From positions 325,949-389,948 of the forward strand of contig OZ287698.1 of NCBI GenBank assembly GCA_965649825.1: a stretch of 64,000 bases of DNA, in the 5' to 3' direction. This stretch comes from Penicillus capitatus. Taxonomy: Eukaryota > Plantae > Chlorophyta. The notes under the pieces are model-generated. The model searched no databases. It was not told the DNA's origin and saw only the letters and a list, made by a program, of their open reading frames with translations. The translations under genes and the position numbers were made by a program. Shown here piece by piece: positions 11,093-64,000 of this stretch (positions are counted from its first letter, which is position 1; every line of letters starts with the position of its first letter).

Positions 11093-12872
11093 ATGGCCTC
11101 CCAAACTGGCGTCGTGGCTGGACTCGTGAACTTTGGAAACACGTGTTACGCCAACGCCTTGCTTCAAGTTCAGTCGCGTCACCTTCGTCCGACGGCGACA
11201 TTTCGTTTTCTAGGCATTGGCGAGTTGCGAAGCGTACTATGAGTACACGCAGTTCATATATAAGACCTTTCCAATTCCTCTCGAACTCGCCAATGCGACG
11301 CAGCACTCGGAGAAATGGAGAGCCAATTTGCCGCTCTCTCGCGCAGTGGCCTGTTGCCTTGAACGGCTACAACCGAGTTACCACACAGCGCCACCCCTCG
11401 CCAGGTATGCCGCCTCTATGAATTTCGTCACAGACCAAATGCGTTGGTGCGTTCGTTCAGCGCTTTGGAAGTCCTGCATACCATTGGTCAACACGACCGT
11501 CGCCTCTTCAACGGATTCGGAGATCAACAGGATGTGGGAGAAGTACTAGACGTAAGCGGTTTGCATTTCCTCACCCCCTCTCACGCTGTTCTTTCTGCAG
11601 TGCATTCTAAATGCCAGTCGTACAGAGTTGCATGCGTGGGGGCAAAAATACCTCCAGGGAGTGCATGCATGGAAGTTGATCGAGGATCCGTCTGATGAAT
11701 ACTCGCCTCGAATGATACGCAATACCTGTGACGGTCTACGTTCAGTCGTGCCGTCCGAAATGCATGCCTTCACGATTCATCAGATTCAATCATTCGGTGG
11801 GTTTGATGGACTCTTGGCCCATCGGTTGGAGTGCTGTCGTTGCAGCCATCACTTTGATGTCCAGCTCAATCCCTTCACCTCCCTTATGTTACCGATCTCC
11901 AATGTCCAGGCAGATTTTCATGAGTTTACAGTGGATGATGGTGTGACACTGGAATCGTGTCTCCGTGATTTTTTCCAGACAAAGAGACAAGGACCCATTC
12001 GCTGTCCCAAGTGCTCTTTTCATTGCACCCTGTCCAGCTGGACGGATCAAGCTCGTTCATCGAGTGCAGAACGCATTTCTGGAAGCTCAACGTCGCCGTC
12101 CACCACAGACGAAGAAATAAACAACTGTCATAGGAATCACCGTGGACTCAGTCACCTGTTGCTCAAGGAAGACAAGCGACAGGAGACGCCCACAAGTGGC
12201 GTGGTGTACCGATGTTGTGCTTCCTTTGATTATAAAGAGTTTCAGAATAACACGATTAAACCATCCAAACCTGATGCAGACAACAAAGAAGCAATGGTGA
12301 AACAAATACTGTCATTAGCCAACAATGCACGCTTCAATGAAGCGATGATCCATACCTGTGCAAAAAAGCTTCAAGAAATAGATATTCCATGGACTGAAGC
12401 TGATAGTCATGTTCATGCTACGACATCTATCGCCAAAAGCCCAAAAGTGTGACGGTCACTCTTTGGCAGGCTGAATTTGAGTGAGATGTGATTCTAGGTG
12501 CTGGCGATATCCCTGCAACGTAAGATCTTTGATGGGACGATGTATCGCAAGATTCAAGGCCGTGTGCGTTATCCCATGAGGCTGAACCTTGCTTCCTTCA
12601 TGCCCTTCCGCAGCGTCCACGGAACGCATTACATCCTCAGGGCTGTTCTTGTGCACCATGGAAACGAAGACAGTGGCCACTATCTCACTGTGCGTTCCAT
12701 TCCCTCCCCAGGCAGACGTTCATACCAGTGGATGCTAACATCCGACGACAAAGTCTATCCCGTAACTGAGAATGCTGTTCTGGGATTGGAGGCCTCTATG
12801 CTGTTCTACGAGAGAAGCACTGCGGAGGATCTAGGTACAGGCACTGACGCATCGTGTTTTATTGATCTCTAA
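11093..12872 (+). CDS. Ubiquitin-specific protease, USP30/UBP27-like
   Basis: Cys box GLVNFGNTCYANALLQ and His box HHGNEDSGHY, with multiple short introns. Confidence 0.85.
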
Positions 12873-31786: not shown

Positions 31787-32966
31787 CTACAGCGTTTTAA
31801 CATCTTGTACGGCAGATACGCGGGTTCCTCGCCATTGGGGAGCGTCAAAAACGCACGTGCCTTCTAGCAATATCTGTTGGCCAGATTCGGACGCCGCCTT
31901 GCAAATGAATACATGCCGACCGTGCGACGCAATGTCGGCACATTCAATGACCTTGCCATGAATACCGCCTGTACGACGCAAAGGCAGATCGAGCGCTATG
32001 TGTCGCGATTCTGTCGGCATGACCTGTGGTATCGTGTGTCTGGGTCGTGAAATGCACCTGCGATGCATCGCCATCCGCATACCATTCACCATCTAAGCAT
32101 CACACAAAGGCGTCACCCTTATGAGACATGCCAACGATGTTTAACTCTCATGGACGAAGATCTGACGAATGAGTTGTGCGTTCTCCTCTTCCGGCGAGCG
32201 ATCGTAGAGACCGTCTACGTTTGTCTGGACATCGATGCCGTCGACGTCAAGACTGAGGGAGGTTTTGTGGGAGACGGACCAGAAAGACGACGTACTCTGG
32301 TTCGAGTGCGGAGGCGAGATGTTTGATGATGACATCGCCACTGCTCACAAAACAGCGACGGTCACACTTCTCACTCTATCTGTCACATCACCTGAGAATG
32401 GTACACCCTTGCTTCTCGTCCAGAATACAGTCGCCATGCAGCACAGGAACGAATCCCGCTTCCAGCAGCGCCGCGATTCCGTCGACGGATCCGTCAGCGA
32501 CCTGCCACGTGAACTGCGCTGAGTTAAGGCGCCGTCGATCCGTGTGCCTCGCCTGGCGATTCGACGTCGTCCAGAAGCCACACGGGGAAACGCCGACGGC
32601 CGGAATGCCGTTGTCGATCAAGGCAGACACCACCATCGTATTGAGCTTTCGCACCGAATTCCTGAACCACAGCGGCCAGTCATAGCGATCCGTTCGATCT
32701 CCAACGACCCACCGCGTTTCGACGAATCCTGTTCGAACGGCGGCTTTGTGAACGCCGCCTCGATCGACGCCGGTCCGACTGGCCTGAAAATGCCCGAACG
32801 ATCCCGCGCCGTGCACGACGACAAAGTCTGCCGTCGAGTTCTGAGCATAGACCTGCTTCAATTGCTCCGCGACGTCGCAAAGGACGGATCCGTTGAGTGT
32901 CTCGAAAGAGGCTTTATCGGTTACAGCAGCCCCTCCCAATTTCACGATGAATCGTATGGCAACCAT
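31787..32966 (-). CDS. IPK: Isopentenyl phosphate kinase (amino-acid-kinase family)
   Basis: IVKLGGAAVTDK, VVVHGAGSFGHFQA, GFVPVLHGDC, ILSGDVII..L, TNVDGLYD and HDTTGGI..KV. Confidence 0.88.
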
Positions 32967-38419: not shown

Positions 38420-41400
38420 TCACATATCCGTCAGTTTCAGCCTCGGCACGACGTTCATTCCCTGCAGCTCTTGGAAAAGAAGCTTGCACGCATAGGGGAT
38501 GGCAATTTTGACCATGTTATCAGGGGAATGATCGACAGGAGAGACAGCGCATTGCCGAGTGGCACTCCAGTATCCCAGCAATCCAGACTTCTGATCGACA
38601 TACACTTCAAACTTGTCGCTGCTCAGCATCAGGCGCTCAACCAGAAGGTTGCTCGCACCGTAGGCGATCAGACAGTCGCGTTCCATCTCGCCTAACCGCA
38701 GGCCGCCGTCTCTCGATCGTCCTTCAGTGGGTTGATGCGTGAGCACCATGCGAGGACCGCGAGCCCGTGCATGCATCTTGTCTTGGACCATGTGTTTGAG
38801 ACGCTGGTAGTAGACGGGACCCATATAGATGTAGGCTTCCAGTGGCTCTCCTGTGATGCCGGAGGTGAGGAAGTCTTTGCCATGATAACTGTAGCCATGG
38901 GCAATTAGAGCCTGGCCGATCTCTTCTGCCGTCGTGGCCAATCCTGTCTCTTCTCCAAACGCCGTTCCATAGTTAAACCGTCCTGCAATGCAAAAGAGTG
39001 AGATTCGTGAGAATGTGTGAGAACATGACCTTGGAGCACAGCCGCTTTGCTGCCAATGAGCTCCAGCATCTTTCCGACGGTCATTCGACTCGGAAATCCG
39101 TGTGGGTTCATGATCTGATCGGGACAGAGTCCCTGTTCCGTAAACGGCATATCCTCCTGGTTCACGATATGACCAATCACTCCTTTCTGCCCATGTCTGG
39201 CACAACACAGTCCATCGCCTTTACGGTTTGTATGATGATGGAGGTACCAATCACCTGCTGCTGAATTTGTCACCGATCTCCGGTCGACGCACATGGCGCA
39301 CGAGCACTTTGATGTTGATGGGACAGTCTCCTGTCTCTGTTAGCAACACGCGATCAATACAGCAGTCGTGCACTCCAGGCGTGCCTGCATTCAATTTCTC
39401 AGCGTCCATCGGCGTCCTGTCCGATACAGGGTCGTGCCTTTGAAGATTTCGGGCCGATGACGGTAGGCCGATTCAGGAATCGATGAAGGATCGGCAACGG
39501 TGTCTCTCGTGTTCTTCGGCACGAACTTGTTGATGTAGACATCTCCTGAATGGATCTTCTCACCCACTGCCGGCAGACCATCCGCCTCCAACACTCGCCA
39601 TCGTGGATTGAGCGATTGCGATTCGTTCGGCGCCAGAGGCGGCCCCCGGATCTAAATCAGATGATCATTTTGATCCAAAACAAAGCGAGTGCCCTGTCCC
39701 GGACCTGATCCATGGTTCTATTGAGATATTTCTTGACCTTCGTCCCGTACTTGCGTAGAACGATGCATCTGCCGAAGCCTCGATCCAGACTGGCTTTGTT
39801 CATGATCGATGCGTCTTCGATATCGTAGCCACTGTAGCTCATGACCGCCAGAGTCGAATTCTGTCCCGCTCCGAGACGATCAAATCCGATGAGCTCGATC
39901 GTGTGCGAGGTTAGGAGTGGCTTCTGAGGGTATGCGAGCAGATAGAGCAACGTATCCATACGGTTCAGCTGATTGAAAGCGACGTTTCCCATGGCCTGCT
40001 TCCCCATGGCACACTGATAGGTATTCCTGGGCGACTGATTGTGATGCGGATAGGGCACGAGACCGGCCACGATGCCCATTATAGTAAACGGCTCGATCTC
40101 CAGATGCGTCGTCTGTTCCCCGCAGTCCCTCTCGTACAGTGCAATCAACGCATTGTTCTCTTCATTGACATCGAGATACTCGATCAGTCCACGATCGATG
40201 AAATCGTTGAAGTTCATTTTCGAAGCTTTGAGAGCATCGAGATGATGTGACTTGACGCGAGGGATGCCTTTGTCGCAGATGATGAGAGGACGACACACGC
40301 GGCCACCATCACAGGAAATGAGAACGCGATCTTGATGCAGACAGATGCTCACGAATTCTCCGCAGCGTCCGTGGCGCCTGAGTTCTCGAAACTGACGAAT
40401 GAATCGCTTGGGACGTTGATGAACGCCGAGGATCACACCGTTGAGAAAAACGAGCAGAGAACAGCACTCGACGAGATCTGCCCCTCTGACCATGCCCCAA
40501 GGCTCGACTCCCAAATGATAGGCTAGTCGACTGAGTGGCGTCGGATCCTCATCCGTCGTGACGTGTGTGAGCAACGCCAGATTCTTCGTCAGTCCACATC
40601 CCTCGCCTTCGGAATATCATCTCACTCTTAACCGTTTCGATCGTCGGATCGACGAGAGAACCTTCGGGTGTGTCGGCTGGACAAGTCATGCCCCATTGAC
40701 TGGGCTGAAGAGATCGTGGACCGCTCACTTTTCTGGACTTTTCGACCGTGCTCGTGATCCGCGTCATCATTCCGGTCGCCGCAATGAAGGACAGACGGGA
40801 AAGGACCTGCCGGACACACCTATCGCCATGCAAAGCCTTCGATCGGGTCACACTTGTGTGACGCCTTTTCGGTCGATTCTGAAGCGTTTGATCGACCAGT
40901 GCCCTGTCGAGAGGGCATGCTCAAAACCAAACGTGATGGTATCTTGCCGAATGCATCGTGCGGCATCGAACTGTGCTGTTCGCGATGCTTTGGCCAGTGT
41001 TGCCTCCGCCTGGCGTTGCAGATCCCAATTGAGTCTCTTGAAGAGATCTTCGAAGAGCAAAGAGATCAACTGTCCCGCCAGCTCCATTCTTTTATTCCCG
41101 TAATAATCTCGATCATCCACGAGCGATGGATCGACCTTCGCTGCCATCATCCTCCTTAGCATGTAGCCCAGATAGGCCACGCGATGTTCGAAATTGAATC
41201 GCTTCATCGGCACGTGATTCAGCACGAGATTCGCCAGGGCATTGCGCGCCTCCTCTGCACGGGGCTGCCGGTGAGCTTCGGCACCGACGCGTTCAAAGTA
41301 AGCCTGCTGTTTGGATGTCATCTTCACTTTGCCTCCGATGTAATCCAATGCCTGATGCTGTGTAAAGATCCCCATTCCCTGGCATTCCATCAAGGTCGGC

Positions 41401-42230
41401 ACCATGAAGTTAACGACAGCCGATTCCTGTCCCACCAACATCACCATCTCCTGATCGCTCGTCACGCCCATGGCTCTGAAAACGATCGCCATGTTGATCT
41501 CTTCCGAGAAGGCGTTGACTTTGAGATAGTATCTCTCCTTCTTCGTGATAATATTCGTCACCGTTTTGCGCTCATGTGTCGAGCTCTGGACCACTGCCTT
41601 CACTTCATCGTTGTTATCGTAGTCGATGATGATACGGTTCTTTGCCAACTGCTCGTGGATCAAGATCACCTTCTCTGTGCCCTTGACCACAAAGTAGCCG
41701 CCCGGATCGAGTGGACACTCTCCCAGCTGTGCCAGTTCGTGTTCGCTCTTTCCGCTCAATACACAGCGATCCGATCGTAGCATGATGGGCAGTCGGCCGA
41801 TCTGTACACTTCCGCCTTCTCTTCGCTTCCCACGCTTGACGACAATCTCTTTGCCCCTTGTATACTCAATGTCCACCGTGATGGGTGCGGAATACGTGAT
41901 ATCACGTAGACGGCATTGCTGAGGGGTGACACTCCGGGCGCGGAATTCGTCTTCGACACTGGGGGTGCCGACGTGAACGTCCAGATACTTGAAGTAGAAA
42001 TTGGGGTCGCTATCGATGACGATTTTTTGATTGGCCTGGGCCTGAACGATCTGGCGCATCTCTTTATTGATGAAGTAGTTAAAGGAATCCACGTGTTGCT
42101 TCACCAGGCCGCGCACTTTGAGGAAAGCGGGAAGCAAGGCGAATTTCTCAGAGGGTGTTTTGATCGGGGCACTCAGTGTTACGGGGTCGCCCTGAAGGCA
42201 GGGATCCAGCAGAGGCACGGACGCCATCAT
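38420..42230 (-). CDS. NRPC2: DNA-directed RNA polymerase III second-largest subunit
   Basis: [68 protein letters not shown] and [18 protein letters not shown]. Confidence 0.95.
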
Positions 42231-42267
42231 CCGAACAATGTGATGTGACAGCCCTGCGTTTGTCGAT
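42231..42267. promoter_or_regulatory. 37-bp divergent spacer between NRPC2 and VPS52, carrying TGATGTGAC
   Basis: ATGs at 42230 (-) and 42268 (+) flank CCGAACAATGTGATGTGACAGCCCTGCGTTTGTCGAT. The promoter role is inferred. Confidence 0.55.
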
Positions 42268-45015
42268 ATGGCTACACCGACTGCCGTCATGGCATACAGT
42301 GAGCAGCTTCGCAAGGCACTGAAAGCACAGTTTCTGGCCGATAGCGACGATTCTGAACACGAAGAGGAGGGCGAGGCGCCGCCACTCGGTGTCGTGTCGA
42401 CAGAAGGGACAGCTTCACTGGGACTACGTGATTTGGAAGCCGAGCTCGAGACCTTTCGAGAACATGACGTCATAAAGGGCATCCTCGACAAAGGATGCGA
42501 TTTACAGAGCTATGCCAAAGAAGTTGAGGAGAAGCTGCGCCGGGTCGAGCTCGATTCCATTCAGGATTACATTCAAGAGAGCGACAATCTCTCCTCCCTG
42601 CATCACCAGGTGATCCACCATCACCTGTCACATCATTTTACCCGTCTGTCCAATCAGATTCATGACTGCGATCGTATCCTGGTGACGATGGAACAGATGC
42701 TTGGCAAATTTCAGTCGGATCTTGGCCAAGTGAGCGAAGAGATTCGTCAACTGCAGAGTCAATCGCAGACCATGAGCGTCAAACTGCGCAACAGACGTGC
42801 AGCAGAAGAAGCGCTGGGCAATTTCATCGATCACATCGCCGTTCCGGACGACATGATCAACAGCGTCCTGGAATCGGAGGTAGACCATAACCCCGACCGT
42901 CGCAACGCCATCGATGGCGTGCTGCGATCAGGTGAATGAAGATTACTTGGAGTATCTGCTGTCGCTCAATCAGAAAGTCAAATTCATTCGTGGCGATGAG
43001 CTGGCATTGTCCTCCGCTGCCTATCAGGACCTGGAGCCTGTGATCGAGAAGCTCCGTCTGAAAGCGGTGTCCAAAGTTCGGGAGTTTCTGCTGCAGAAGG
43101 TCTATCAGTTGCGTCGTCCCAGGACGAACATCCAGATCATCCAGCAGAATGTCCTGCTGCGATTCAAGTACTTTGTCACCTTTCTGAAAGAGCACGGAGG
43201 CGATGTCTATACCGAAGTCCGCGGCGAATACTCAAAGACGCTCTCCCGTGTGCTGTCGCAGCATTTCAGGTCCTATCTCTTCGACATCGACAAGATGCAT
43301 CAGAGCATTGCCACGAAGAGCGATGTACTGGGATCGCAGAAGGAGGAGTTTGGCACGACGCTGTCTTCCTTCTTCGGCGCCTCGCCCAGCGGCACACCCA
43401 AAGCGAACAGAGGGGTAAACACGACACGAGGGTCCATCCCTACACGCACGGTCTGTTTGTCTTAGTCCAAGACATCGGTCTTCGAATTGGGCGATCGTCT
43501 CCACGTGCTTCAGAACCTCGAGAAAGCGGCGATCGTGCCTCACGTGGCAGAGTACGAGGGAAAGAAGTTTCCGTACGAGGTCGGTCACTCTTTTTGGCAA
43601 TGAGATGGCAGCCATCCACGTATACCCTTAGGTCATCTTCCGCAATGTCCACAAACTACTGATGGACACAGCAACGACGGAATACCTCTTCTGCTGCGAT
43701 TTCTTTGCCGAGAGCGAAGTCTTCCGCGAACTCTTCCAGCCGATCATCGCCGTCGTCGAAGGCGAATTTACATCCACGATGCATGTAGGATACACCGAAC
43801 CAGCCCTCTCTATACTTATTCTCTGTATGACATGTACAGGACGTCTATGATGTGATCTCACTGCTGTTGATGATTCGCATCAACCACGAGCACCATCGCA
43901 TCATGACGCGACGTCGCGTGCCGTGCTTGGATGATTATCTGGACAGAATCAATCTCGTACTGTGGCCAAAGTTCAAGAGCGTCTTCGATGCACAGCTCGA
44001 AAGCATCAAGAAAGGCAACGAGAAAGCGCTGTTTGCCAATTCCCCTGCTGTCCACATCGTCACACGGCGTTTTGCATCGATGGTGGCATCGCTGCTCGTG
44101 CTGACAGCTGGATACGAAGAGGATGAAGAGGGAGCCTTCAATGTCTCTGGCTTTGATCATATGCTCGAGAGACTTCGCACGGCATTCTGCAGTCTGCTCT
44201 CTCGCATTTCACGACTGTTCAAAGACAAGAGGTCATCTCTTCCTTCCTGCCCCTGCAAATGTCGCCATACGGCATGTCTAGATCGAGCATCGTTTTCCTG
44301 GTTGCCAATTTCAGTCATGTTGTCACGGTGTTGAAAGAATGCAGTGTGGCACACGGCGCCGCCACTTCGCAAGATCCTGGCAGCTGTCACGTCATCTCGG
44401 TGGGCAAGATGGGAACGCTGGCCATCAAAGAATACGAGGTGTTCTCGCTTGTGCACTTAAGAGCGACAGAGCATCGTGCATGCAGGAGCATCTGCTGAGC
44501 TGTACCAACAGCTATGTGGAGGATCAATTGGATCAACACTTCCATCAGCTGATCGATTTTCTGAAGTCTGCTGAAACGGCACAGAAACAACACGCCGTGG
44601 CAGACGGTTCCATCATTCCAGGTCTGTCACATTGACCCCAACGGCACGTGCTTTCTCATACGAAACGACAGGATTCGGACCCGAAGAGGCCACTCCTGTG
44701 TTTCAAGACTTTGCTGCGCGTTGGACGTCATCCATCGAAGCGATGAACAAGGAAGTGACGATGCAGTTCTCCGGACTATCCTGTGGGAAAGATGTCCTAC
44801 AAGTGCGACATCTCGTCTGCCTCTCTCTCCCTGACGCTCTGCCTCTGCAGGCTTCCATGACACAACTCCTCCTCTACTACACCCGACTGCTAGAACTGAT
44901 CAAGAAACAAGGCGCCGAGGGCAATGCCGTTGTGCGCGATGCCGTCAATATCCCTTCCATTATGTACGAGATCAAGAAATACACACTTGTCACACGATCC
45001 CATGGCGGATCTTGA
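42268..45015 (+). CDS. VPS52: GARP complex subunit VPS52
   Basis: VELDSIQDYIQES.NL..LH.QI..CD.IL..MEQML..FQ.DLG..S.EI, FPYEVIFRNVHKLLMD.AT.EYLFC.DFF and IMYEIKKY. The ATG is 42268 or 42289. Confidence 0.92.
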
Positions 45016-52087: not shown

Positions 52088-52380
52088 AGACGGTGGCGTA
52101 AGGTGTTGTATACGGTTACCGTATATGTCCAGCCGAATGAGCGGTTGAGGGGCAGCGTCTTTATTTGCATTGCATTGCATTGGATTGAGACAAACACGTG
52201 ATTTTCACTCGTCCCTCTGTTCGGCTCTTCACCTGCTCCACAACCGGCGGTCGTTTGCATTTGCGTTGTCTTATTGCGTCAACTTTGTCCGTCGCTTCGC
52301 CGTCGCGACATTCAGTCGATTCTTTTTTGTGGAAAAAGGGAACAGCTCCGCTCCGTCGCACCGTGCCTACCACGTTCGCT

Positions 52381-53898
52381 ATGGCGCCAGGAGTTATGTG
52401 GACGAAAGAGGTACCATCGCATCGCTGTGGAATCGCAGTAGGAATTGAGGGTTTGGCTGTGTGCGTTCGTTCACTCGGTCAGGACTGTGACAAACTCAAC
52501 GAGCTCGTCGAGCGACACGGAAAAAAGTGGACACCGATCGCGTCCTTTCTAGGAGAGGGTAAAACGGGAAAACAAGTATGGATGTCTGCCTCTTTTGCCT
52601 TGACGGATAGCGAGCCGTCACGATGGATGTCTTAGTGCCGGCGTCAGTGGGAACGACTCAATATCATGACGAAGCAATGCGGCTGGTCGCCAGAGGTGCG
52701 ATGACGCAGACGGTGGTGAAACATTTCCCGACGCGTGGACTGTAGGAAGATGCAATGCTGTTGGAATTCCATTCGAAACTCGGAAACAAGTGGACAAGAA
52801 TCTCGCGAATGATTGGTGGACGGACGGACAATGCCGTGAAGAATCGATACCACGCTCTCAGGCTGAAACGCAAGACGAAGTATTTGACCCGAGTCGATGC
52901 TCAAGGACAAAACAGCGAAAACGTAAGTGTATGTTCGTGCGCTCGAGCGTGCGTTCGTGCGTTGACATGAGGTGGTGGTGGTGTTTGGTTAGGGACTCGG
53001 TAAGAGATGTCTTCGGAATTGCAGTTCGTTGGAGCAGAGACGTGCTGCGAAAGAGGCAGGGATAGAGAAATCGGGTGATGGGACGTCGCTGTCCGATGCA
53101 GCGGAGGGCGTTCAGTTCAAAAGCGAGGCACTGCACAAGACTGGGTACTATCCGAATTACGAGGGAACATGGACAGCGGGTAACCATTTCCCCTCGACGG
53201 ATTCAACGTGGACACAGCGAGAGACATGCAAAATTCAGCAGGCTTCATCTGCTGTACCTTATAGCGGATTAGGCATCTACACGCAAGCCCATGCGGCACC
53301 GGAGGCAATGAACAACGGTCAGCAACGGACTCTTTTTTTGAATCTCGCCAGTGAAGCTGGCCCCTCCATCATGGCACCCTCTCGGGTATCACCCGGCAGC
53401 AATCGAATGGCTGTGGACGATTCGGATTCGATGGAATCTTCATCCGAGAATAAACTGATTGCGATGTCGACGGTGCAGTCCGAAAGTAAGATAAAAGTGT
53501 GAGAAATGCAATGTATGAGTGAGAATGGTGTGTTGGATGATGTAGGTTTGCCGCAGATCTACGAGAGTGGTGCACCCCTGAATTCTCCGTTCTACTTGAG
53601 CACGAATTCGCATCCATTGCCATCTCGTGTCGTGGATGGAGGTCACCCGATCGAGATGCTGAGCTACAGTAGCGCACCCTTTTCGTTACCCGAATCCACC
53701 ATCCCCACGAAGAAGGTTCCAGATCTCACACTGGATTTGACATTCCAGCAGAAGATTGATGGCTTTGATTTTGACTCATTCCTTCACTCCGTGTCTCCGA
53801 TGTCCCCGACGGCGTATCTAAAATTCCTCAACTCCCTCAGTCCCATCAACCGCCAGCCTTCATGTGTATCCGACCACGATTCGCACATGAAACCTTGA
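52381..53898 (+). CDS. R2R3-type MYB transcription factor
   Basis: WTKE...HGKKWTPIA..LGEGKTGKQCRRQW and WSPEED.ML...H..LGNKWTRIS..I.GRTDNAVKNRY. Confidence 0.88.
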
Positions 53899-54742
53899 TT
53901 GAAACCATGACGTACGTACGCAGTCAAGGATTGAGCTGGTTGTTCGGCGTCAAGTATCATAAACATAGACGGTCCTTTCCCTATGTATCAAGCCAAGACA
54001 TCTTTTGTTCAATTTCTATACATACAAGATCTATTTCATCAGAATGGATATCCCGTTCGCTGTTGGGGGGTGGACTGTGGTGGCAAGTTATAAGAAAAGG
54101 GGGGAACGTGTACGGAGAGAATGCGTGTCTCTGTTTTTCTTTTCATGTTCCCCGTTGATCTTTCTCCAGATGAACTAACTCTTTTCCATCGAAAATACGA
54201 GCTGAGCATCTTATGATTCTTTTCTTTTCCATTTGAGGGATGACGACGGATGCGTTGCCATCACAGTCTTGCTGTCAGAGGCATGAGGAATTCAATGACT
54301 AAGAAACATCATCTGAATTCATGCTGCATGTGCTTCTGGCGGCTTTGATACAAGTCTCAAGATCCTAGATGATTATTTATGGTATGTCTTTGGTCATCAT
54401 CATATGTGAAGAACCATGGGCGGCTGTACAAAATGCTTAAGCGTAAAGTGGGAAAGTAGATCGGCGTAGTCTACCACTGAATAAGGACATCATGACTCAA
54501 GTATGTGAACCTGCGACCTGCCCCAAGGATTCTCTGTGATGATTTGCATTTTTAAAAAATGCTCGATTCAATGTGACAAACGTTAAAAGGACTAGCAGTA
54601 GCAGTCGGATGCATGCATCCATCCATTCATCCTCCATGCTAAATGTTACACAAACCATTAGCCATCTGACTGGAAAGCTCCTTTCAGAGCAGACGCAGCT
54701 GAAAGATACTTCACCGCTTCGTCAAAGATTTCCTAATGAACA

Positions 54743-55844
54743 TCACGCATAGTCACGCATCTGTACCCCTCCCCCTTCGTTTCTCTTACTTTCTCCTTGA
54801 GAAGTCTCGCTTGACAGCTGCGCTCTTCCAGAATCTGTGTGCATCATATGGGGCTTGTTCCTGGTTCGCATGATAAGGGAGCAGCGCACTTTTTGTTGTT
54901 CTATTTGACTCTCTGTGAAAAGGGAAGCAAACCAGAACGAGAGTTCCACGGGATTCATGTCATTTAGCTCGTCTGGTTCTGTATAAGCCTCTAGATCTGT
55001 TCCTCTCACTTTCCGACTTAACCGCGAAACATTACGGTAAAGCTCAGTCACTTCATTGCTCAGATCGCGAATCTCCTGATGCCATCCATCAGGGCCATCA
55101 CACGGTGCCAAGAACAGGGGATCAACCTCCGGTGGCACAGTGGCGGGCGTATCGGGCAGCATCTCTACTTCGCAGATAACGACGGGCTCTGTTTTCACGA
55201 CCTCTTTCACGCAGAATCGTTCGATGCCTTTGTTGACGATCACCAGCTGTCCATCGACTTGACGCTGGTGCTCCTGGACGTGCAGCATCGTCCCGATCTT
55301 GGACATATGACCCTGGGCTGCGAAACACATGCCTGAAAAGACAGCAGTGTCCAATCGGTCGCTGTCGGGTATGACCTTACCGAATTGCCGTGTTCCTTTG
55401 AAGGGACTGTCCATCTGAATCAGCTCTTCCTCTAAACTGAAGACATCGATCGACTGCAGGAATTCTGAAGTGTGCAATCTCCTTACTTTGCCTCTCCGGC
55501 GAGGAGGGTATTGAACAGGACGCGATATCTATGAGGAATCCATTCCACTGTTAAGGGGAAGAGTGATGTTGACGTGACAGCAGTCACCTGGCTTCGAAGA
55601 TGTACAGAGGTGTTAAGCAGCCAGGCATGGCAACGACACCAAGGGGGAAGATCGGCAAGGTTCGGGTCTCACGTGTCTCTTCCTCGTCCCCAGGGGCACT
55701 GGCGATGCGCCAACTGTCGCTTCTATGGTATCGCCGGTCGCGGATTTCGCAACGGCGTCCCGTCGGACGCACAGACGAGCTTCGATGGAACACTGGCCAT
55801 GGTGTTGGGGCGAGTCGATGAGGAAGGCTGAGGTGGAAAGGCAT
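54743..55844 (-). CDS. Lon protease substrate-binding (LON N) domain protein, plastid-type, without a protease domain
   Basis: A transit-like N-terminus, LPIFPLGVVAMPG..TPL.IFEARYRVLF, RQFG, G..RF.V..VVKT.P and ELSFWFASLF. The 3' end is approximate. Confidence 0.85.
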
Positions 55845-55885
55845 GTAATTCGAACCAGTGCAGATGTCACGTCATCTTGACCATC

Positions 55886-57179
55886 ATGTTGCGCCAACTG
55901 ACGCGCCGATGTTTCATGAACGTCGCGGAGACGGTGGACTGCGTCGTGATTGGGGCAGGTTTGGTATCTATGTGGAGAAGAACATGGGCAGGAGTGTATG
56001 TCACACAGGGGTCGTCGGTTTGGCCATTGCTCGCGCGTTGGCACAGGCAGAGAGAGAAGTGTTGGTTTTGGAGCAGAGCGCCACGGCGGGGACGGGAGTG
56101 TCATCACGCAACAGTGAAGGTGTGAGATGATCATCTCCTAAAATGTGTGACATGATGATGTGACGTGTAGTCATCCATGCCGGAATCTATTACAAGAAAG
56201 ATTCCCTTAAGGCCGCTCTCTGCGTGGAGGGAAAACGCATGCTGTATGCGTACTGTCGCGAAAAGAGCATTCCGCACAAGCAATGTGGAAAACTCATTGT
56301 CGCCACGCATCCAAGGTCACACTTTGTACATAGGTCACACTTGTGATGTCGATCTGTAGTCAGCTCCGTACATTAAGTGAACTCGAAGTGCAAGCGAAGG
56401 AGAACGGAGTGGATGACGTGGAGCGACTCGATCGGAGAGACGTGCAGATTCTGGAGCCACATGTGCAATGCCTGGGTGCCTGTCTGTCGCCATCGACTGG
56501 CATCATCGACAGTCATCAACTCATGCATGCTCTTCAGGCCGATGCCGAAGCCGCGGGTGCTGTCTTCTCGTTCAACAGCCAAGTGGTCGGCGGTGATGTG
56601 ACATCTCCTGTCAAAGAACTGCAGGTGAAGAGCACAGATGGGGAAGAAACGCAGATCCATGCCCACAACATCGTCAATGCTGCCGGATTAACAGCGTGGG
56701 ACGTTGCTGGGTCTTTGAATGGATATGCCGCGCAGTATCTACCCAAGCGGCATTTTGCGAGGGGGTGCTATTTCGCCCTAAAAGGCCAAGCGCCGTTTAC
56801 TCGACTGATTTACCCCATTCCTGAACCGGGAGGCCTGGGCATCCATCTCACACTCGATTTGCAAGGGAAGGCGAAATTCGGACCGGATGTTGAGTGGATT
56901 GATACTATTGATTTTACAATTGATCCAACAAGGGCTCAGAAATTCTATGCAGCCATACGAAGCTATTATCCTGTATTGCCAGATGACAGTCTCGTGCCCG
57001 ATTACGCCGGAATCCGACCAAAGAACGTAGGACCTGGTGAAGCCGCCGCAGATTTTCTCATACAAACGCATCAGTCCCATGTGATCTTGGGACTGATTCA
57101 TTTATTTGGTATCGAATCTCCGGGGCTCACCGCCTCGCTTGCCATCGGAGAATATATTGCTGAGATACTGGATGGTTGA
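55886..57179 (+). CDS. L2HGDH: L-2-hydroxyglutarate dehydrogenase
   Basis: [64 protein letters not shown] and [10 protein letters not shown]. Confidence 0.92.
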
Positions 57180-57186
57180 GATGACC

Positions 57187-57907
57187 TTATCGGCTATGGG
57201 TCGTGATCTCCTGCAGCCACGTGCCTTGCAAAGGACTGGCATTTCTGTAACGAAACGTGCCTAGTACATAAGACGGATCGTCAGACAGACGGTTAGGGTG
57301 GCGGCGGCGGGTCTCACTCAAAGGAATCTCTTGCATTTCTCGACGAATGCAGATCCATTCGGAAAGCAGCGCCATCATTCCGAGTCCGATCGAATTGGCC
57401 GCCCACCATTCGACGTTGTGCGGAAATCCTCCATAGAGGAGACAGAAGACAGAATGCAAGATGTACACTGTCGCTGAGAAATCCAGGCACTTCTTGGATC
57501 GTTCCACCTAGACAGGCACGCACACTGCTGTCACATCAACCGATCACACACATAGGGCATGCACAATGTGAACGAGGCAGACCGACGTTACGAGTGACGA
57601 GAGGAGATGAATGAGAATCGTTAGAGCGCCCGACATGTTTTTGAGCGTCAGCGTTCGCCAGTCAAAAATGTGGGCCAGCGTGACAGGCCGCACCAACTTG
57701 CCTGGACATATCCATCTCATACACAGCCATACAGCAGGGGGAGTATTACTGAGGGCCAGGTATTCCAGGAAGCCGATAGATAAGTAGAAGAGGCATTGAA
57801 GTGTGATAATCTGTGAGAGAATCAAGACGGGATCCCAGACCTAAGAGAAAACGAAGGCCTTAGTGGGTCTAAGAGTCAACGTCGCGCACCTGAGCGCCAT
57901 AAAACAT
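57187..57907 (-). CDS. SYS1: Golgi membrane protein SYS1
   Basis: MFYGAQ|VWDPVLILSQIITLQCLFY, ERSKKCLDFSATVYILH and EWICIRREMQEIP. Confidence 0.9.
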
Positions 57908-58125
57908 CACGCGGTATCGCGACGCACCAACAGACGATAGACACAGATACGGAGTCTGTCGTTAGATGACTTCGTAGCTCAGCGCGATTATCCGATGGTC
58001 GATGAGATGAAGCGACTCGACGCGGGGACGGTCGTCTGTTGAGCATTGAGAAAAAATGGTGTTCATCGAAATGAACAAACGCCATTGCTGTCACATCAAC
58101 GTCACGTCAGTTGTGTTGTTGTATG

Positions 58126-59364
58126 CTACTCCGTGGCATAGGGGTCGGTGTCGACATCGGAGTCCGACAAGAAGTCGTCGTCGTCAGCCAGTTCCATACG
58201 ATCTGGGGAAAATTCGGTGAGGGGGATGTCGTCTGGAAGATGAACGGGTGAGAGATCCGGTGCGGCGTGAAGTCCTTTCTCTAATGTTTGCAAAACGGGC
58301 GTCTCCAAAGACATGTAGTAAACCACTCTCAGCAACTGTCACATCAAGCACAACATCCCGATCCTGTCACATCAGTCGGATGCAAAAGAGTGACCAGTAG
58401 ACTTGGGATGTCTCCGAGATTGGGCGATGGAAAGGATGTGCAGGAGGTTCGGGAGGTGACGGCGGTGCTTTCGTCCGATGCCGGTGCGAAGGCACTGGGA
58501 ACAGAGATCAAATAAAAACATAAGAGTGAGAAGTGTGACCTTTCTCTCCCACGTTTAACACCAAGCTCTGCACAGCGAGGCATACCTTTCTCCAGTCTCT
58601 TATGACACAGCAGTAGACATCTCACACTCTCTCTGAAACCAAAAGAATAGAAAGCATGGCGCTCTTTCTGCACATAACCCGCTTTGCACGCAACTCCGTC
58701 CGGACAGGAGGTATTACTGTCCATGGCAGTGCAGGAGGGCGACGTATCCAAGCATCCAATGGCTCTTGTCCGCCAAAAATCACCTTCGCCGAGTGCTTCA
58801 TCATCAAACTGCAGAACTGAGCAATTCGCACCTCGTTCTGATTGATCGCCATGCGGCGGCACGTCTTGCAGTCTCGGACGATCCACGGATGCGAAGCATA
58901 GGTCCGATACCTAACGACACAGTCATACACGTATCTATCCTCGCTTCCGTATGCACGATACCGTTTGTTCTGTCCCGGTTCGATGATGCTGTAAGCGATC
59001 TACGTTCACACCTATCTCACTCTTTTATTGATGTGCGAGGTCGCGCACTTCGTGGCCGCTGAAATCTAGCCAGATCGCACGGGCCCGGTCATCGGAGGCG
59101 TTGTGGAAGTTGATGACCGTCACCTGTTCGCTCTTGACCGATCGAAGTCGCACCTGAGAAGGCGGTTAGCGAAAAAGGCGGCGGCGCCGCCGGGACAGGC
59201 GCTACGTCGACGATCTCTTTGACACGGTTGCCAGAATGGGAGGTCACCGTCGCGAAAGCGAGTTCCGTGATGTCGCTTGGGCGATAACGAAAGAGACATC
59301 TTTGTTCGAGCGTTTCTAAATTGTGACCATAGTGTTCTTCCCAATCGTCCAATCCCGCAGCCAT
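58126..59364 (-). CDS. pVHL-like beta-domain protein with a helical C-terminal module and acidic tail
   Basis: The spliced frame gives RSVKSEQVTVINFHNASDDRARAIWLDFSGHEIAYSIIEPGQNKRYRTYASHPWIVRD, which aligns without gaps to pVHL residues W88-W117. Confidence 0.8.
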
Positions 59365-59464
59365 TTCGAAAAAGAAAACCGTCGACAACGCACAGAAACT
59401 CGACCAACGTCACATACAGCGCACGCACAACATGCTCACGTCACATCGTAGATGATGGGATGGC

Positions 59465-60662
59465 TCAGCGATAACGATCGGACTCGTACATTGGCGGCGT
59501 TCTGGAGCCGAGATCTCGACAGTCGCCTTCTTCAGGCAGAACGCGAACGAATTTGGGAGAAGAATGGTAACCGTTGCGGCAGACAAAGCGACGTTTAATC
59601 GGGTGATCCATGAGATTGGCGGCGTCACAGGGGTGGTGATCTTCGGGAAAGGGATGTGACGGCTCGATAAAACAGCGCACTTGACGGACGTGTCGCTGCA
59701 GATCAGTGAGAAGTGGATAGGTCGATTGCCGCAACAGCTGTTGAGCATCTCGTAGTTCGCCGATTTGTGAAGCGAGTCGGATCTGTTGCTTCGAAATCGA
59801 TCGTAGATCGTCGCAGAGATTCGACAGCTGCAAAGGACATACTGGATCACGCCCCTCATCTTTCATCAGATTCGCGCTCCTCTCACTCTCTGGATGACGG
59901 CGGCTTTCTGGGGCTGCTTGATCTGTGCAGTGATGTGACGTCTGGACGATGGTGTTCTGTACATCCGAGAGGGTACGTTGCTGCTCAGAGAGACGCGCTT
60001 CCATGATATTGAGTCGATGCTGCAGGTCGTCAGGAGCATCCAGTACGGTATGTGTGCGTTGTCCGATCTCGGTGATCTTTCTGGCAACGGATTCGCCCCA
60101 CTGCAAGGAAGAAAGGGTAGGTGATGCGACGGTTATGAGTGAGTTTGCGTCGCCAGACTCGGCAACGGAGTCGCCCAGTTGTAAGGGGGAGAGGGCAGGT
60201 GATGTGACTGTTAAGAGTGAGCAGACGTCACCAGTCTTGGCAACGGATGTGACGTCCAATGGCAGAATCGACTCTTCCTTCGCTTCTTGGACAGCGCTTT
60301 CCTTGTTCTCCGTTCCTTTCTCCACCGAACGGATGTCTTCCATTTTTGCTCCTAGTCGATCACTCAACCGTGACACTTTTCAAAAGCTGACGTGTCACAC
60401 TCGTGTGAGATAATGTACTACGAAGGGAGGCAATTTCGCGTATGTACTCGCCGACCCGTTCGTCGATTTGCGACGGCGCGAGTTCTTTCTCCTTCACAGC
60501 AATACCAAGAGTCCTGGCACGCGTCGCAAGCACTTCACAGCTCTCGCAGCACGCCACAAGTTGCGCAACGCAGTCGTTCGCGACTTCTGTATATTGCTGT
60601 AATCGACGGCAAAGATCGTGATGTGTATCATCATCACAAACCGCCCTCTCCGCTTTGCCCAT
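59465..60662 (-). CDS. Hypothetical coiled-coil protein with an internal 26-aa repeat
   Basis: Two long open frames (60360-60722 and 59465-60376) with heptad-like segments. I recognised no family. Confidence 0.5.
60083..60250. repeat. 78-bp coding tandem repeat, about 2.1 copies
   Basis: GGCAACGG recurs at 60083, 60161 and 60239. The repeat encodes GDVCSLLTVTSPALSPLQLGDSVAES / GDANSLITVASPTLSSLQWGESVARK. Confidence 0.85.
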
Positions 60663-60829
60663 CTCTCTCCATCGCTCTTCCTCACTGCACTCCTCAACAA
60701 CGGCGATCGCGAAACCAAACAAACACAGGTGGCGTTACTACTCACTCAATATGAACCGAGGAAAATCGCTCAGCCGTCAAGTCAATGTTTTGATCATGCT
60801 TGTCTTTTTCTCTGCAAGTGTATGTGCGC

Positions 60830-63800
60830 TTAAGTACAGTCGTGTGACGTATGCAACCGTTTTTTAGATGCGCCTAGCTGAAGCCACTGTCGCATGAGTT
60901 TGACAATGGAGATCGTGGCTTCCTTCGTCGCAGGCGGCGTTCTTGGATTCTCCGCCATCACGAAGTGTTCGAAACTGGACGGTTCCGTCTGTGCGCGTGC
61001 GGCCGGCTGAAGCGATATCGCGCGATCGCCCAATAGCGCCGACGACGGTAGACTGCCATACCGATTCCGTTGGCTAAGCAGCGCGGGCGCATCCAAAGTC
61101 TCCTGCATTCCGAAAGCGAACATTGAAGGAGCGGAGGCGATAATTGTCATAACGAGGGAGGGACGTATAGACACATCCAAGAAAAAAGTCTTCACCATCT
61201 CCTGTTCACAGACCACCCCCATGCGTTCTCTCCTGTCGTAGCTTGTTCATCGCAATTGCACGTAGTAGCTGTTGCTGTCTTCCACTCTACCAGGCAGAGA
61301 GCGTTGTCTGGTGTGAAAAGGAACGGATGGCACACGACCTGAGTGAGCGCCGGAATCCGGCCCTCATCCAACGGAAGGCACTCTTTGCCGAAAGGACAAA
61401 GGATAGACGCCGTGTGCCGTCGACACTCTGGTTCCGAATCCACCTCTGACGGTACCGCAGCAGGCCGACGGCGAGAAAAACGGTCAGAAAGAACACGGCG
61501 AATCCAAATGCCCAACTGTCGGCAGGAGCATTTGGCTCTCCCGACGACGATTCTGCCACCTGAGGCGCACGCATCGCCGCGAGATCAAAGGACGTGCCTC
61601 TCAGGCTAACCGTTGCGAATTCGTCGACGCCTGTGATGTGAAGCGCCGCTTCCTCATTCGCTCTTCGACATGTGTCTCCATGCACAATGCGCTTTGCGTC
61701 TTCGGCGACGACGTAACGACCGCTCTCGATGAGCTAGTCGACCAATCATCTCTCGTTTCGGCGCAAGGTATGTGCGTTCGCTCACTTCGCATTTCGGAAT
61801 TCTTTGACGGATGTCGCTGCAAGCCTTGTTCTCTCCAGTGCCAACTTGGCGAAAGCCGTAGTCACACATCTTATCATCTTCTGTGCAGCGACATGGTTGC
61901 TCAGGAAAGCGTCTGCGTTGATAATCTCCTCCATTAAGACAACGGGCATCTCTTCGTCTTTTCTCGATGCGTACAGAAGCGCCGAGCAGACATGGCGATT
62001 TCTTGTTGTCCAGCACCATCCACACTTGATAGTCTTCTGCCTTGCAGTTGTCCAGCTGAACGACCTCCCGAACGTCCAATGTGTAGACAATGCCAGACGG
62101 ATAGGTCGTCTTCTTCTCCGCCGAGCATTGCGGATGTTGAGTCCGATCGCAGGCGAGGCCGTGAATGACAAAACGTGATCGCTGGCCATCCGGTTCGATC
62201 CTGAACGACACCGTAGAGCGTTTGCCAAGAGAAGAGACGTCTTTTCATTTCTCTACCGGATTTTCTGAACGAGCATGGCTGCTTCAATGGTTATCGTATG
62301 CCAGCAGCGGCCTTCATCGACCGAGATCTTCACTGCATCCGTCGGACCTGCGAGACGGTGACGTGCCATGACTAAGATACCACCAAAGTCGCCGTATTCA
62401 AAAGTGTGCAACCCGACGGCCACGTCGCGCCACGTGACGCCGCCGTCGATCGAGAGCCATGTACAGACATCGCCATCCACAAGCCCATGCAATCCAACCA
62501 TGCCGACACCCATTAACACGCCTGGAGCGCTGTCGTGTGAATAGACGACGGTTGCGGACGGCGATCCATCGCGACCCCAAACGGCTGATCCGTGGAGATT
62601 GAGATAGCAATGATCACCCGGAACGCAACGATTGCATTCCGAATGCGTAAAGCGATCCGGTGCCGAGATCCGTTCCCACGTTACCCCGCCGTTGTACGTG
62701 ACCTTCGTGATAAACGTCCCGCTGTCCGACACCTGACGGACGTGGCGCGATTCGAGTTCTTGATTGGCAACGTAAGCTCCGGGGAGTCCCCGAATGAGCT
62801 CGAAGTCAACGACGCGTGTTACGGAGTCGTAACGAAGCCTCGGCAGCGTCTCGGTATAGATCGCTGCATGTGACGCCGAGGCATAGACAATGCTCGATCT
62901 CTTGATGGCTTCGAATCCCGCCAACGCAGTGCGTTGCGTATGAAACACAATAACAAAGGCGCCATCTCCATCATGCGTCACCACCGTAGAATAGCCAGAT
63001 TGCTAAGGAACCTGCCGCTGGCGACGGTTAGGAAGATGGGCCAAACCTGCAGAGCGACTGGGACGCACGCTTCGTGGAATGTCTGGCCGGCGTCGGTACT
63101 GACGTGAAGTGTGACGCCTTTCAGCCAGTCCATCGATTCGGAGACAGATCTCTCTTTGCCGTAGATGTCGACAGGACAGGCGTTTGAGATGCCAAGGAGA
63201 ACGACGCCGGAGGTGATTTCGAACTGAACGCCGCAAGGAACGGTCTTCGTTTCGGGCGTCTGGAAAAAATCTTCCGATGCGACAAAGTGCACGTCCTTGT
63301 CCCAACCGACATACAAGCCTTTCATCTGATCTGCCTCTTTGTAAACGGTGGCCAGAACTAACATCTCCGACGGCAAACCATTCTAAAACACATGTCTATG
63401 TATCCGCTTTGAATCGCACGGCCTGATCGACTTTGCTTTTCGCGTTCCATCCCCAGTCAAAATCGACAAAGGCAACGATACCGTCCGCTGCCGCCGTTAG
63501 ATTTCGCCACAGCTGATCACCCCAGAGATCCTGACACGCATGCGTTGCGAGACAGCGGAGAGGGACGACTGCAGGCGACTGTGGTGAGGAAGAGATCTTT
63601 GGAGCAGTCAGGGGTGAAGACGAATTGCCTGTCGTCGCATGCGTCGCGTTCGACAAGGGCCAATGCCCATGCTTCACGCTTCGGGTGCATTTTGATCAGG
63701 TGATCGCTCCCCGTCGTTCTTCCCGGCGTCTCCACAGCTCGTACGGACGCGCCGCCATCTGTCGAAATCCAATGATAGTTGCCCGCGCCTTGGAAGAAGA

Positions 63801-64000
63801 GGCGTTCGCTGTCGTGTGCGCTAGCAAAGATCCGCACGACGCCGTAAATCGCTTGATCGTCTACACGTCTTTTCGGAAGTGCCTCTGCAAAAGAAAACCC
63901 AGGCTGGCGAGAGGTTTATGTGAGATCTGAGAATTACGGTTAAAAAAGAGTGACATATCTTCGAACGTCGCGCCTTTGTCTGTCGAGCGCCAGACGCGTC
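60830..64000 (-). CDS. VPS10-domain (sortilin-like) type I membrane receptor; 5' end lies outside the window
   Basis: BNR/Asp-box repeats (STDGGAS, STDAGQTF, TYNGGVTW, SIDGGVTW, SVDEGRCW), GDFGGILV, the 10CC region CRCTEDDKMCDYGF, and a TM segment near 61470-61530. The cytosolic tail end is approximate. Confidence 0.85.

Follow-up and report, generated by a model that had tools for sequence, protein, structure and literature searches.

A VHL-fold protein of the green alga Penicillus capitatus with a predicted hydroxyproline cage and a C-terminal module unlike the VHL box

Does a green alga keep a reader of prolyl hydroxylation of the type that animals use in oxygen sensing? pVHL is the textbook prolyl-hydroxylation reader and is usually treated as an animal-only part of the HIF oxygen-sensing system; HIF is absent outside animals (PMC5800844). 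The question is raised by a 64,000-nucleotide stretch of Penicillus capitatus DNA (assembly GCA_965649825.1, contig OZ287698.1, positions 325,949 to 389,948 of the forward strand), hereafter the window, whose own numbering is used throughout. A sequence-only reading by a model had described a pVHL-like protein with an intact hydroxyproline-binding pocket at 58126-59364 and proposed it as a HIF-independent E3 ubiquitin ligase adaptor. We found that a real gene encoding a homologue of the VHL beta domain is present with near certainty. The gene belongs to a family that is catalogued in the databases and seemingly unstudied, and its architecture departs from that of pVHL.

The coding sequence lies on the minus strand from 59364 to 58126, with the ATG at 59364 and the TAG at 58128-58126, which is exactly the span first proposed. 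It escapes the open reading frame (ORF) list, as had been pointed out, and is split there into five fragments in different frames. Exons were joined over GT-AG introns on the reverse complement of 59500-58000, and the final model has 8 exons, 7 GT-AG introns and 294 residues. The introns measure 52, 49, 51, 48, 50, 45 and 59 nt from the first to the seventh (range 45-59). The features, in the direction of transcription, are as follows.

58126..59364, minus strand: whole VHL-like coding region, with Pfam, PDB, AlphaFold and orthologue support
59206..59364, minus strand: exon 1, residues 1-53, N-terminal extension adding three strands to the beta sandwich
59154..59205, minus strand: intron 1, 52 nt, GT-AG, phase 0; its junction ..IVD/VRLRS fits the VRLRS of homologues
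59049..59153, minus strand: exon 2, residues 54-88, start of the VHL beta domain, with W81 (human W88; codon 59072-59070)
59000..59048, minus strand: intron 2, 49 nt, GT-AG; its junction GHE/IAY is gapless in homologues, and it is the intron named in the sequence-only reading
58962..58999, minus strand: exon 3, residues 89-101, with Y91 (human Y98; codon 58993-58991)
58911..58961, minus strand: intron 3, 51 nt, GT-AG, phase 2; no homologue has an insertion here
58832..58910, minus strand: exon 4, residues 101-127, with T104 (human S111), H108 (H115) and W110 (W117), codons 58903-58883
58784..58831, minus strand: intron 4, 48 nt, GT-AG, in frame and stop-free; supported by Caulerpa and the family alignment, with one of six polymorphisms inside
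58718..58783, minus strand: exon 5, residues 128-149, last beta strands, ending ..PPALPWT
58668..58717, minus strand: intron 5, 50 nt, GT-AG; its junction PWT/KERH fits IWTKETH of Enallax, with three of six polymorphisms inside
58540..58667, minus strand: exon 6, residues 150-192, conserved helix A, (W)TKERHAFYSFGFRESVRCLLLCHKRL, then the start of a disordered linker
58495..58539, minus strand: intron 6, 45 nt, GT-AG, in frame and stop-free, with a pyrimidine-rich 3' end and 38% GC
58395..58494, minus strand: exon 7, residues 192-225, remainder of the linker and first part of helix B (NLGDIPSLL)
58336..58394, minus strand: intron 7, 59 nt, GT-AG; it holds two TGATGTGACA copies, the second abutting the 3' splice site, and one of six polymorphisms
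58126..58335, minus strand: exon 8, residues 226-294 and TAG, remainder of helix B, then the conserved tail LHAAPDLSPVHLPDDIPLTEF and the acidic end

The sequence-only reading had joined the exons correctly in part. The 49-nt intron that it named, 59048-59000, is a clean GT-AG intron, its peptide IWLDFSGHEIAYSIIEPGQNKRYRTYASHPW corresponds to residues 80-110 of the joined exons, and the C-terminal strings that it quoted are all present in the translated model; it missed, however, one 48-nt in-frame intron (58831-58784). Our own first model, with 6 introns and 310 residues, was dropped when the Caulerpa orthologue exposed the same extra intron. Intron 4 was accepted because its removal makes ..NQNE/VIFGG.. 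colinear with ..NTSEVIFGS.. of Caulerpa, and it accounts for 16 residues of the first model (RIAQFCSLMMKHSAK plus one). Since the orthologue and the family alignment show this intron to be real, the protein has 294 residues and not 310.

Retention of intron 5 would bring the reading frame to a stop. Splicing of intron 7 leaves 35 residues in the stretch from NLGD to HAAP, identical in length to Caulerpa; an alternative acceptor within it, at the first TGATGTGACAG, was rejected on reading the sequence, as the resulting frame has no homology. Intron 6 is the least certain of the seven and merely probable. Homologues cannot decide it because the site falls in the disordered linker, and its retention would add 15 residues and affect no domain. 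The first 17 nt of intron 6 (GTCACACTTCTCACTCT, within 58539-58520) recur exactly at ~32360 (32357-32390), just ahead of a copy of GTCACATCA; the two sites may share a short sequence of intron-like or mobile nature.

What is the folded part of this protein? Residues 56-131 matched the Pfam VHL beta family PF01847 at E 2.2e-14, scoring 53.7 bits where the cut-off is 21, in line with the earlier assignment. In a phmmer search of PDB sequences, human and mouse pVHL were the only matches (E ~1e-8). Residues 56-130 align with 63-137 of human pVHL without a gap over 75 residues, at ~28% identity and with an offset of +7 (human numbering was fixed by the 213-residue chain 8qvu_F). This recovers the gapless alignment that had been claimed from the letters, with W88, Y98, H115 and W117 kept and S111 replaced by threonine.

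AlphaFold2, given a 19-sequence family alignment, produced a model with a mean predicted local distance difference test score (pLDDT) of 83.4 and a predicted template modelling score of 0.75; block means were 92-98 from about residue 21 to 170. Strands cover residues 23-141. Three of them, 23-26, 34-41 and 47-54 (pLDDT >90), come from exon 1 and are not present in pVHL, and the exon 1 N-terminus is similar to that of the Caulerpa orthologue (P0008). When the model was compared with the PDB by Foldseek, all 50 of the 50 top listed matches were pVHL chains (E ~1e-10, target-normalised TM 0.55-0.67), in alignments of 117-131 columns that exceed the ~93-residue beta domain. The model thus shows residues ~20-148 as a predicted VHL-type beta sandwich, homologous to the substrate-binding beta domain of pVHL.

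We then compared the pocket position by position. In pVHL the hydroxyproline site is made of W88, Y98, H110, S111, H115 and W117; the hydroxyl group contacts S111 and H115, the hydroxyproline carbonyl Y98 and its NH the backbone of H110 (PMC9528729). The algal central site reads W81, Y91, R103, T104, H108 and W110, where the gapless alignment sets W81 against W88, Y91 against Y98, T104 against S111, H108 against H115 and W110 against W117. The flanking sub-sites of pVHL are F91, Y112, N67 and R69 on one side and F76, I109, P86, P99, L101 and R107 on the other (PMC9528729). Their algal counterparts are F84, Y105, K60 and E62 for the first flank and F69, Y102, A79, S92, I94 and K100 for the second. 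According to alignment and model, the central cage is therefore preserved (W81, Y91, T104, H108 and W110, plus F69, F84 and Y105), while the sub-sites that hold the HIF flanks are largely changed (N67K, R69E, P86A, P99S and I109Y). In the saturation genome editing data for human VHL, p.S111T scored -0.105 and was classed 'Neutral', as were p.H110R, p.N67K and p.P99S (PMC11250436, supplementary file 3); these pocket-proximal differences are therefore individually compatible with pVHL function. At the level of sequence and model, an intact pocket, as the sequence-only reading put it, is a fair description. The only experimentally known ligand of the VHL pocket is 4-hydroxyproline (PMC9528729).

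Could the reading frame be a chance mosaic of ORFs or a pseudogene without function? The 5' splice sites have little in common but GT, and two of the introns are in frame and stop-free, as such an explanation would have it. It is effectively refuted by homologue E-values of 1e-14 to 1e-53, by a full-length colinear orthologue at 48% identity, by the confident fold and by the lack of any non-synonymous polymorphism. The junctions have independent support as well. On a 1.8-kb JGI contig (L002), an ORF without breaks, MAQPAAG...KQVRLRSVQS.., crosses the junction positions in the folded parts. Homologues from transcript assemblies (Enallax, Netrium, Acetabularia and an MMETSP culture) likewise cross them without gaps, and pLDDT is 92-98 over all junctions within the folded parts.

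The polymorphisms come from a second haplotype. Window positions 52344-64000 correspond to 863-12519 of a metagenome contig (L001; ENA metagenome assembly ERZ25074695, ctg340486, 1.02 Mb) with 99.7% identity over 11.7 kb, 33 mismatches and no gaps. This long eukaryotic contig comes from the same species or a very close strain, and the genes on it were called as prokaryotic. Six differences fall in the gene: five are intronic, three of them in intron 5, and one is a synonymous CTG>CTT change. Introns make up 28.6% of the gene, and the chance of at least five of six differences falling in them is P=0.009. With five of six single-nucleotide polymorphisms intronic and the sixth synonymous, the gene is under purifying selection. 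It is an intact nuclear gene of expressed type, and its product is soluble, 294 residues long and without a signal peptide.

What stands in the place of the VHL box? In the model, two confident helices, 158-175 (helix A) and 223-236 (helix B), occupy the region where pVHL has it. Helix A (pLDDT ~97) comes right after the last strand, in the manner of H1 of pVHL; the full-length model gives helix B and the tail to residue 267 a pLDDT of 90-96 and shows the linker 181-208 as disordered. When the C-terminus was modelled alone, both helices were kept (pLDDT ~96), while the tail had no beta bridges and a pLDDT of 62-80. The bridges at residues 254 and 256-257 appear only when the beta domain is included. 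This loss of bridges and confidence suggests that the conserved Pro-rich tail packs back onto the beta domain.

The best structural match, animal pVHL, is the substrate receptor of the Cul2-Elongin B/C ligase (PDB 1LM8, 1VCB). Its beta domain is homologous to the algal one; both share the five cage positions (S111 as Thr), F76, F91 and Y112, and a helix directly after the last strand. They differ in that the algal protein lacks a VHL box, with neither the BC-box Leu/Cys nor a Cul2 box nor a match to PF17211, is extended at the N-terminus by three further strands, has a disordered linker between its C-terminal helices and carries the HIF-flank changes listed above. One could still suppose a true pVHL orthologue that works as in animals, with a diverged VHL box binding Elongin C/B and Cul2, since helix 158-175 sits at the topological place of pVHL H1 and the Foldseek alignments pass the beta domain. 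We consider this very improbable. VHL_C (PF17211) gave no match at E<=1 with the whole protein or at E<=10 with the C-terminus. The pattern of a BC box, (S/T/P)-L-x3-(C/S/A)-x3-(V/I/L), followed by a Cul2 box was not found in the window protein. On inspection of the sequences, the equivalents of BC-box L158 and C162 are K150 and A154, and the family conserves no Leu or Cys/Ser/Ala in either column. Comparison by hhalign with a hand-typed SOCS/VHL-box alignment gave a probability of 0.2% (P=0.34), and a SOCS-box identity (BC box plus the Cul5 box LPxP) was rejected on the same figure. Moreover, the plant lineage has CUL1, CUL3 and CUL4 but is not known to have a Cul2/Cul5-Elongin B system. The sequence-only reading was thus right that the tail is not a recognisable VHL box, and its suggestion that the tail could recruit Elongin and a cullin finds no support in these comparisons.

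A different likeness was found in helix B, LGDIPSLLLLRVV (in the family LGDLPxELLLxII..AP), which resembles the first helix, LPxEILxxI, of F-box proteins, the receptors of SCF (Skp1-cullin-F-box) ligases. Against a hand-typed F-box set, hhalign aligned 20-21 columns with P 5e-5 and 2.6e-4 and probabilities of 67% and 42%. F-box and F-box-like were the only Pfam families matched by more than one family C-terminus, weakly and in 3 of 20; the E-values were at best 0.025 for F-box-like and 0.064 for F-box. Unlike in F-box proteins, the algal motif is C-terminal and follows the substrate-binding domain. Helices 2 and 3 with the conserved Trp, which complete the ~45-residue three-helix unit, are absent: the alignment ends after helix 1, and several family members terminate within ~25 residues of the helix B LP. 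On these sequence comparisons the resemblance of helix B to F-box helix 1 is suggestive, a lead and not a membership. A concatenated profile of helices A and B (A2) found nothing at E<=10 in a word-indexed protein database, an index that returned only 2-3 relatives even for the full protein or the family profile; against PDB sequences it gave only a chance match to syntenin (E 1.2). Helix A (..LLCHKRL..) may be likened to the DDB1-binding H-box helices, a lead for which the PDB and Pfam searches gave no support.

Is the arrangement peculiar to Penicillus? An exhaustive HMMER scan of 1.84 billion representative proteins returned 889 relatives at E<=1e-3, of which 84 reached E<=1e-10; the full-length colinear P0008 (4e-53, 48% identity) and P0010 (2e-31) belong to this set. 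Source names were obtained by exact-sequence look-ups. The nearest named orthologue, at 48% identity, is from Caulerpa lentillifera (order Bryopsidales), whereas the family homologue of Ostreobium quekettii has 31% identity only. Among the 31 members looked up, all named ones are from chlorophyte or streptophyte algae (19 taxa), and many are unnamed metagenome or transcript sequences. The named sources include Caulerpa lentillifera, Bryopsis sp., Acetabularia acetabulum, Ostreobium quekettii, Enallax costatus, Haematococcus lacustris, Hariotina reticulata, Chlamydomonas sp. UWO241, Pycnococcus provasolii, Mesostigma viride, Chlorokybus atmophyticus, Klebsormidium nitens, K. subtile, Chara braunii, three Closterium strains and Netrium digitus. 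The nearest orthologues are all green-algal, in agreement with the algal origin assumed by the sequence-only reading, and they make the organism a probable ulvophyte close to Bryopsidales.

Many of the best-matching relatives consist of an optional N-terminal extension, the beta domain, helix A, a linker, helix B and often a Pro-rich tail with an acidic end. Helix A has the motif ..PP-x-L-x-W-x4-H-xx-FP-xx-F-[KR]-xx-V-[KR]-x-LLLCH-x-R (in short, W-x4-H-xx-FP-xx-F-x7-LLLCH-R) and helix B the motif LGDLP-x-[ED]-[LIV][LV]L-x-I[IV]-xxx-AP; in the tail [AH]PD[IL]-x-P-xx-LP recurs, followed by the acidic end. Both helix motifs were present in 32 sequences, the window protein included, with linkers of 7 to 273 residues. 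Across 19 aligned members S58, N71, W81, G86, Y91, H108, W110, F160 and L168 are invariant, and E88, T104, W148, H153 and P222 nearly so. The window protein fits this colinear architecture and deviates at FP (YS) and AP (SL); together with Caulerpa it differs from the other green-algal members in lacking the 'AP' after helix B and in its longer tail. As judged from the alignments, chlorophyte and streptophyte algae alike conserve this arrangement as a whole.

The databases already label several of these proteins, and in this respect the novelty claimed at first was overstated, although the gene itself was correctly recognised. Klebsormidium nitens GAQ92053.1 is named 'Tumour suppressor protein von Hippel-Lindau disease', the Haematococcus protein 'VHL domain-containing protein', and those of Chara and Pycnococcus 'VHL ... 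beta domain-containing protein' in UniRef. GAQ92053.1, Chara braunii GBG75787.1, Pycnococcus provasolii GHP06716.1, Haematococcus lacustris GFH12239.1, Bryopsis GMH38890.1 and Caulerpa lentillifera g8028 all have the same architecture as the window protein. We found no functional study of algal or protist VHL-like proteins in the literature, and a mention of PF01847 indexed for a Toxoplasma paper was not located in its text or supplements.

Does a preserved cage by itself indicate a ligase receptor? For the wider superfamily we took 135 non-animal proteins from the 150 best matches. PF01847 was present in 134 of them and the VHL box PF17211 in 2. Their partner domains include CAP, TIR, ricin-type lectin (RicinB), laminin-G (Laminin_G_3), calpain, caspase, kinase, SAM, ankyrin and more. 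The columns conserved in at least 90% of the 135 are exactly N78, W88, G93, Y98, S111 (as Thr), H115 and W117 in human numbering. Either ligand binding by the cage is ancestral and general, or the cage residues are needed for the fold. Because the pocket residues are conserved in non-animal and bacterial VHL-beta proteins without a ligase context, the beta domain or an intact pocket alone implies no E3 adaptor. Of the hydroxyproline-reading E3 adaptor proposed from the sequence, the VHL-beta homology and the five kept pocket positions stand, and the step from the pocket to the ligase does not follow.

Other VHL-beta proteins outside animals share the beta domain and the N/W/G/Y/T/H/W columns with the algal protein but are joined to other partner domains or repeated in tandem, and the helix A/helix B module is missing from all of them. 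Prokaryotic VHL beta domains are given as 'function unknown', and one is an accessory protein of retron type X (PMC7736814); the alga Aureococcus has a SELENOM-pVHL fusion (PMC7539508). The top-scoring proteins, P0003-P0007, have ~1700-2000 residues and 9-11 tandem VHL-beta units. Taken with P0015, P0016, P0019 and P0026 the range is ~1700-2100 residues and 6-11 units, all with the W/Y/T/H/W cage; these tandem-unit proteins score above animal pVHL against the algal protein. In P0003 the units are followed by a long region of membrane-associated look. One tandem-unit cluster includes a sequence from a catalogue of metagenome-assembled genomes, and some shorter relatives look like secreted bacterial proteins.

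Such relatives raise the possibility that the cage binds a non-prolyl ligand such as a sugar, or else hydroxyproline in glycosylated form, as might hold for the secreted bacterial multi-repeat proteins. Fusions to RicinB, Laminin_G_3, CAP and Ig-like domains, the 9-11 tandem copies in ~2000-residue proteins and the stated lack of a function for prokaryotic VHL beta domains (PMC7736814) would fit. We nevertheless regard it as improbable for the algal protein, given that the sole experimentally known pocket ligand is 4-hydroxyproline (PMC9528729) and that the protein is not exposed to cell-wall glycans because it has no signal peptide.

What, then, might the protein do? We lean, by a small measure, towards a VHL-fold reader of prolyl or hydroxyprolyl peptides joined to a lineage-specific helical docking module. 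For the first part of this, peptide binding through the pocket, we see the chances as balanced. The cage would bind a short peptide of a non-HIF partner that contains proline or, most likely, 4-hydroxyproline; since the sub-sites for the HIF flanks differ, the sequence context of that peptide would differ as well. Like the alpha domain of pVHL, the helical module would stabilise the beta domain; it would also dock the reader to another protein. Our best guess for the docking partner would be a Skp1-type adaptor, bound through the LGDIPxxLLxxV stretch that is like F-box helix 1, which would make the protein a hydroxylation-dependent substrate receptor; this is the weakest step of the proposal. 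As the plant lineage uses CUL1, CUL3 and CUL4 and is not known to have a Cul2-Elongin B system, an SCF link would be the more natural one. Even so, a role in a ubiquitin ligase is on the whole unlikely.

That such an architecture can be functional follows from a synthetic chimera that joins VHL's beta domain to an F-box from a plant, reported in 2026, which is a working O2-dependent E3 receptor in plants (PMC13223302). Like the algal protein it combines a VHL beta domain with a docking element other than the VHL box in a cell of the green lineage, and it reads prolyl hydroxylation. It differs in being synthetic, in having a complete plant F-box and in reading the human HIF oxygen-dependent degradation domain, hydroxylated by a transplanted PHD (PMC13223302). 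A writer enzyme plausibly exists in the lineage: green algae (Chlamydomonas) are among the protists with genes like those of the Skp1 modification pathway (PMC3515798), and PHD homologues outside animals are reported to act on non-HIF substrates (PMC7864055). In its widest form the proposal would be a HIF-independent green-algal pathway, in which a PHD/PhyA-type cytosolic hydroxylase marks a client, possibly Skp1 itself or a regulator, the VHL-type pocket reads the mark and helices A and B couple it to an SCF-type ligase or another effector. We regard this full pathway as speculative and rather unlikely.

Several observations weigh against a hydroxyproline reader with a docking module. The pocket columns are the most conserved ones in 135 diverse VHL-beta proteins and may serve folding or another ligand. 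The F-box likeness spans 20-21 of 49 columns and would be non-significant in a search of a whole profile library, and the F-box and SOCS reference alignments were typed by hand. The window protein has no F-box match even at E<=10, its C-terminus matches none of the Pfam families, and Foldseek of the isolated C-terminal model against the PDB gave no match. Docking of the tail is read solely from DSSP and pLDDT differences between two models. Genes for a prolyl hydroxylase, Skp1 and Elongin C were not found in the 64-kb window, where tblastn with human PHD2, SKP1 and Elongin C (hand-typed queries) gave noise only.

The same observations leave room for a peptide-binding or scaffold protein without a ubiquitin-ligase role, whose beta domain binds a Pro-rich or hydroxyproline motif. 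Here the helices and the Pro-rich tail would be merely a structural cap, or the tail (..AAPDLSPVHLP..) would act in cis as a pseudo-ligand that gates the groove. The VHL beta domain is promiscuous in non-animal proteins, with a VHL box in only 2 of 135, and neither Pfam families nor PDB folds gave the C-terminal module a significant match. Conservation also covers [AH]PD[IL]xP in the tail, and the tail bridges (254, 256-257) and the pLDDT of 90-96 depend on the beta domain, falling to 62-80 otherwise. On the other hand, the conserved LP-x-[ED]-LL-x-I helix, alone among the features, has a non-random likeness to a ligase-docking motif, and both the window protein and Caulerpa have lost the near-invariant 'AP' that follows helix B. 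We consider such a scaffold a tentative alternative to the reader with a docking module, possible but not the likely answer.

The gene lies among housekeeping nuclear genes (RPB2, NOT2/3, NIF phosphatase, Suf, sortilin/Vps10, DAO and others). The gene for the second-largest RNA polymerase subunit, with Rpb2 domains 1, 2, 4, 5, 6 and 7, extends on the minus strand over 38420-42491 in at least three long ORFs, and the NOT2/3 (19633-21330) and DAO (56343-57179) genes are likewise interrupted. The window thus shows a compact nuclear genome with many short introns. An Rfam scan of the window found nothing. The upstream neighbour is a minus-strand ORF, 59465-60376, of 303 residues without a Pfam match, whose stop lies ~100 nt from the ATG of the VHL-like gene. 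Within it, at 60083-60247, there is a 78-nt tandem repeat (2.1 copies, 78% match) that encodes the duplicated peptide ..SLLTVTSPALSPLQLGDSVA / SLITVASPTLSSLQWGESVA...

A 9-mer, GTCACATCA (reverse complement TGATGTGAC), occurs in 38 exact copies in the 64 kb, where length alone predicts ~0.5. With at most one mismatch, TGTCACATCA has 49 copies against 7.8 +/- 3.0 in shuffles. Two flavours occur, TGATGTGACAG (12 copies) and TGATGTGACGT (13 copies), and the flanks hold no longer shared repeat. Examples of GTCACATCA are at 57530, 58090, 58338 and 58366 on the plus strand and at 59931 and 60200 on the minus strand. Copies are found in introns, two of them in intron 7 of the VHL-like gene, and in its 3' flank, 37 nt past the stop; related TGTGACGT motifs lie within 100 nt upstream of its ATG. 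The 9-mer could be a transcription-factor site, a splicing signal or a 3'-end signal.

The finding means that selection has kept a VHL fold with its hydroxyproline cage across the green algae, where it is part of another architecture and HIF is absent. Should hydroxyproline be what the pocket reads, the protein would be a direct handle on the signalling targets of cytosolic prolyl hydroxylases in algae; in protists, Skp1 hydroxylation is the only known case. It would also bear on whether the reader predates the animal pathway, and it would be a natural counterpart to the synthetic VHL-beta/F-box oxygen switches engineered in plants. Should the full pathway hold, 'degron reading' of hydroxyproline by the VHL fold would predate animals and HIF and would have undergone rewiring in the green lineage. 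If, on the contrary, hydroxyproline is not read by the pocket, the pocket residues shared by the superfamily have another role. Either way, the gene allows a direct test of hydroxyproline reading by the VHL fold outside the animal HIF pathway.

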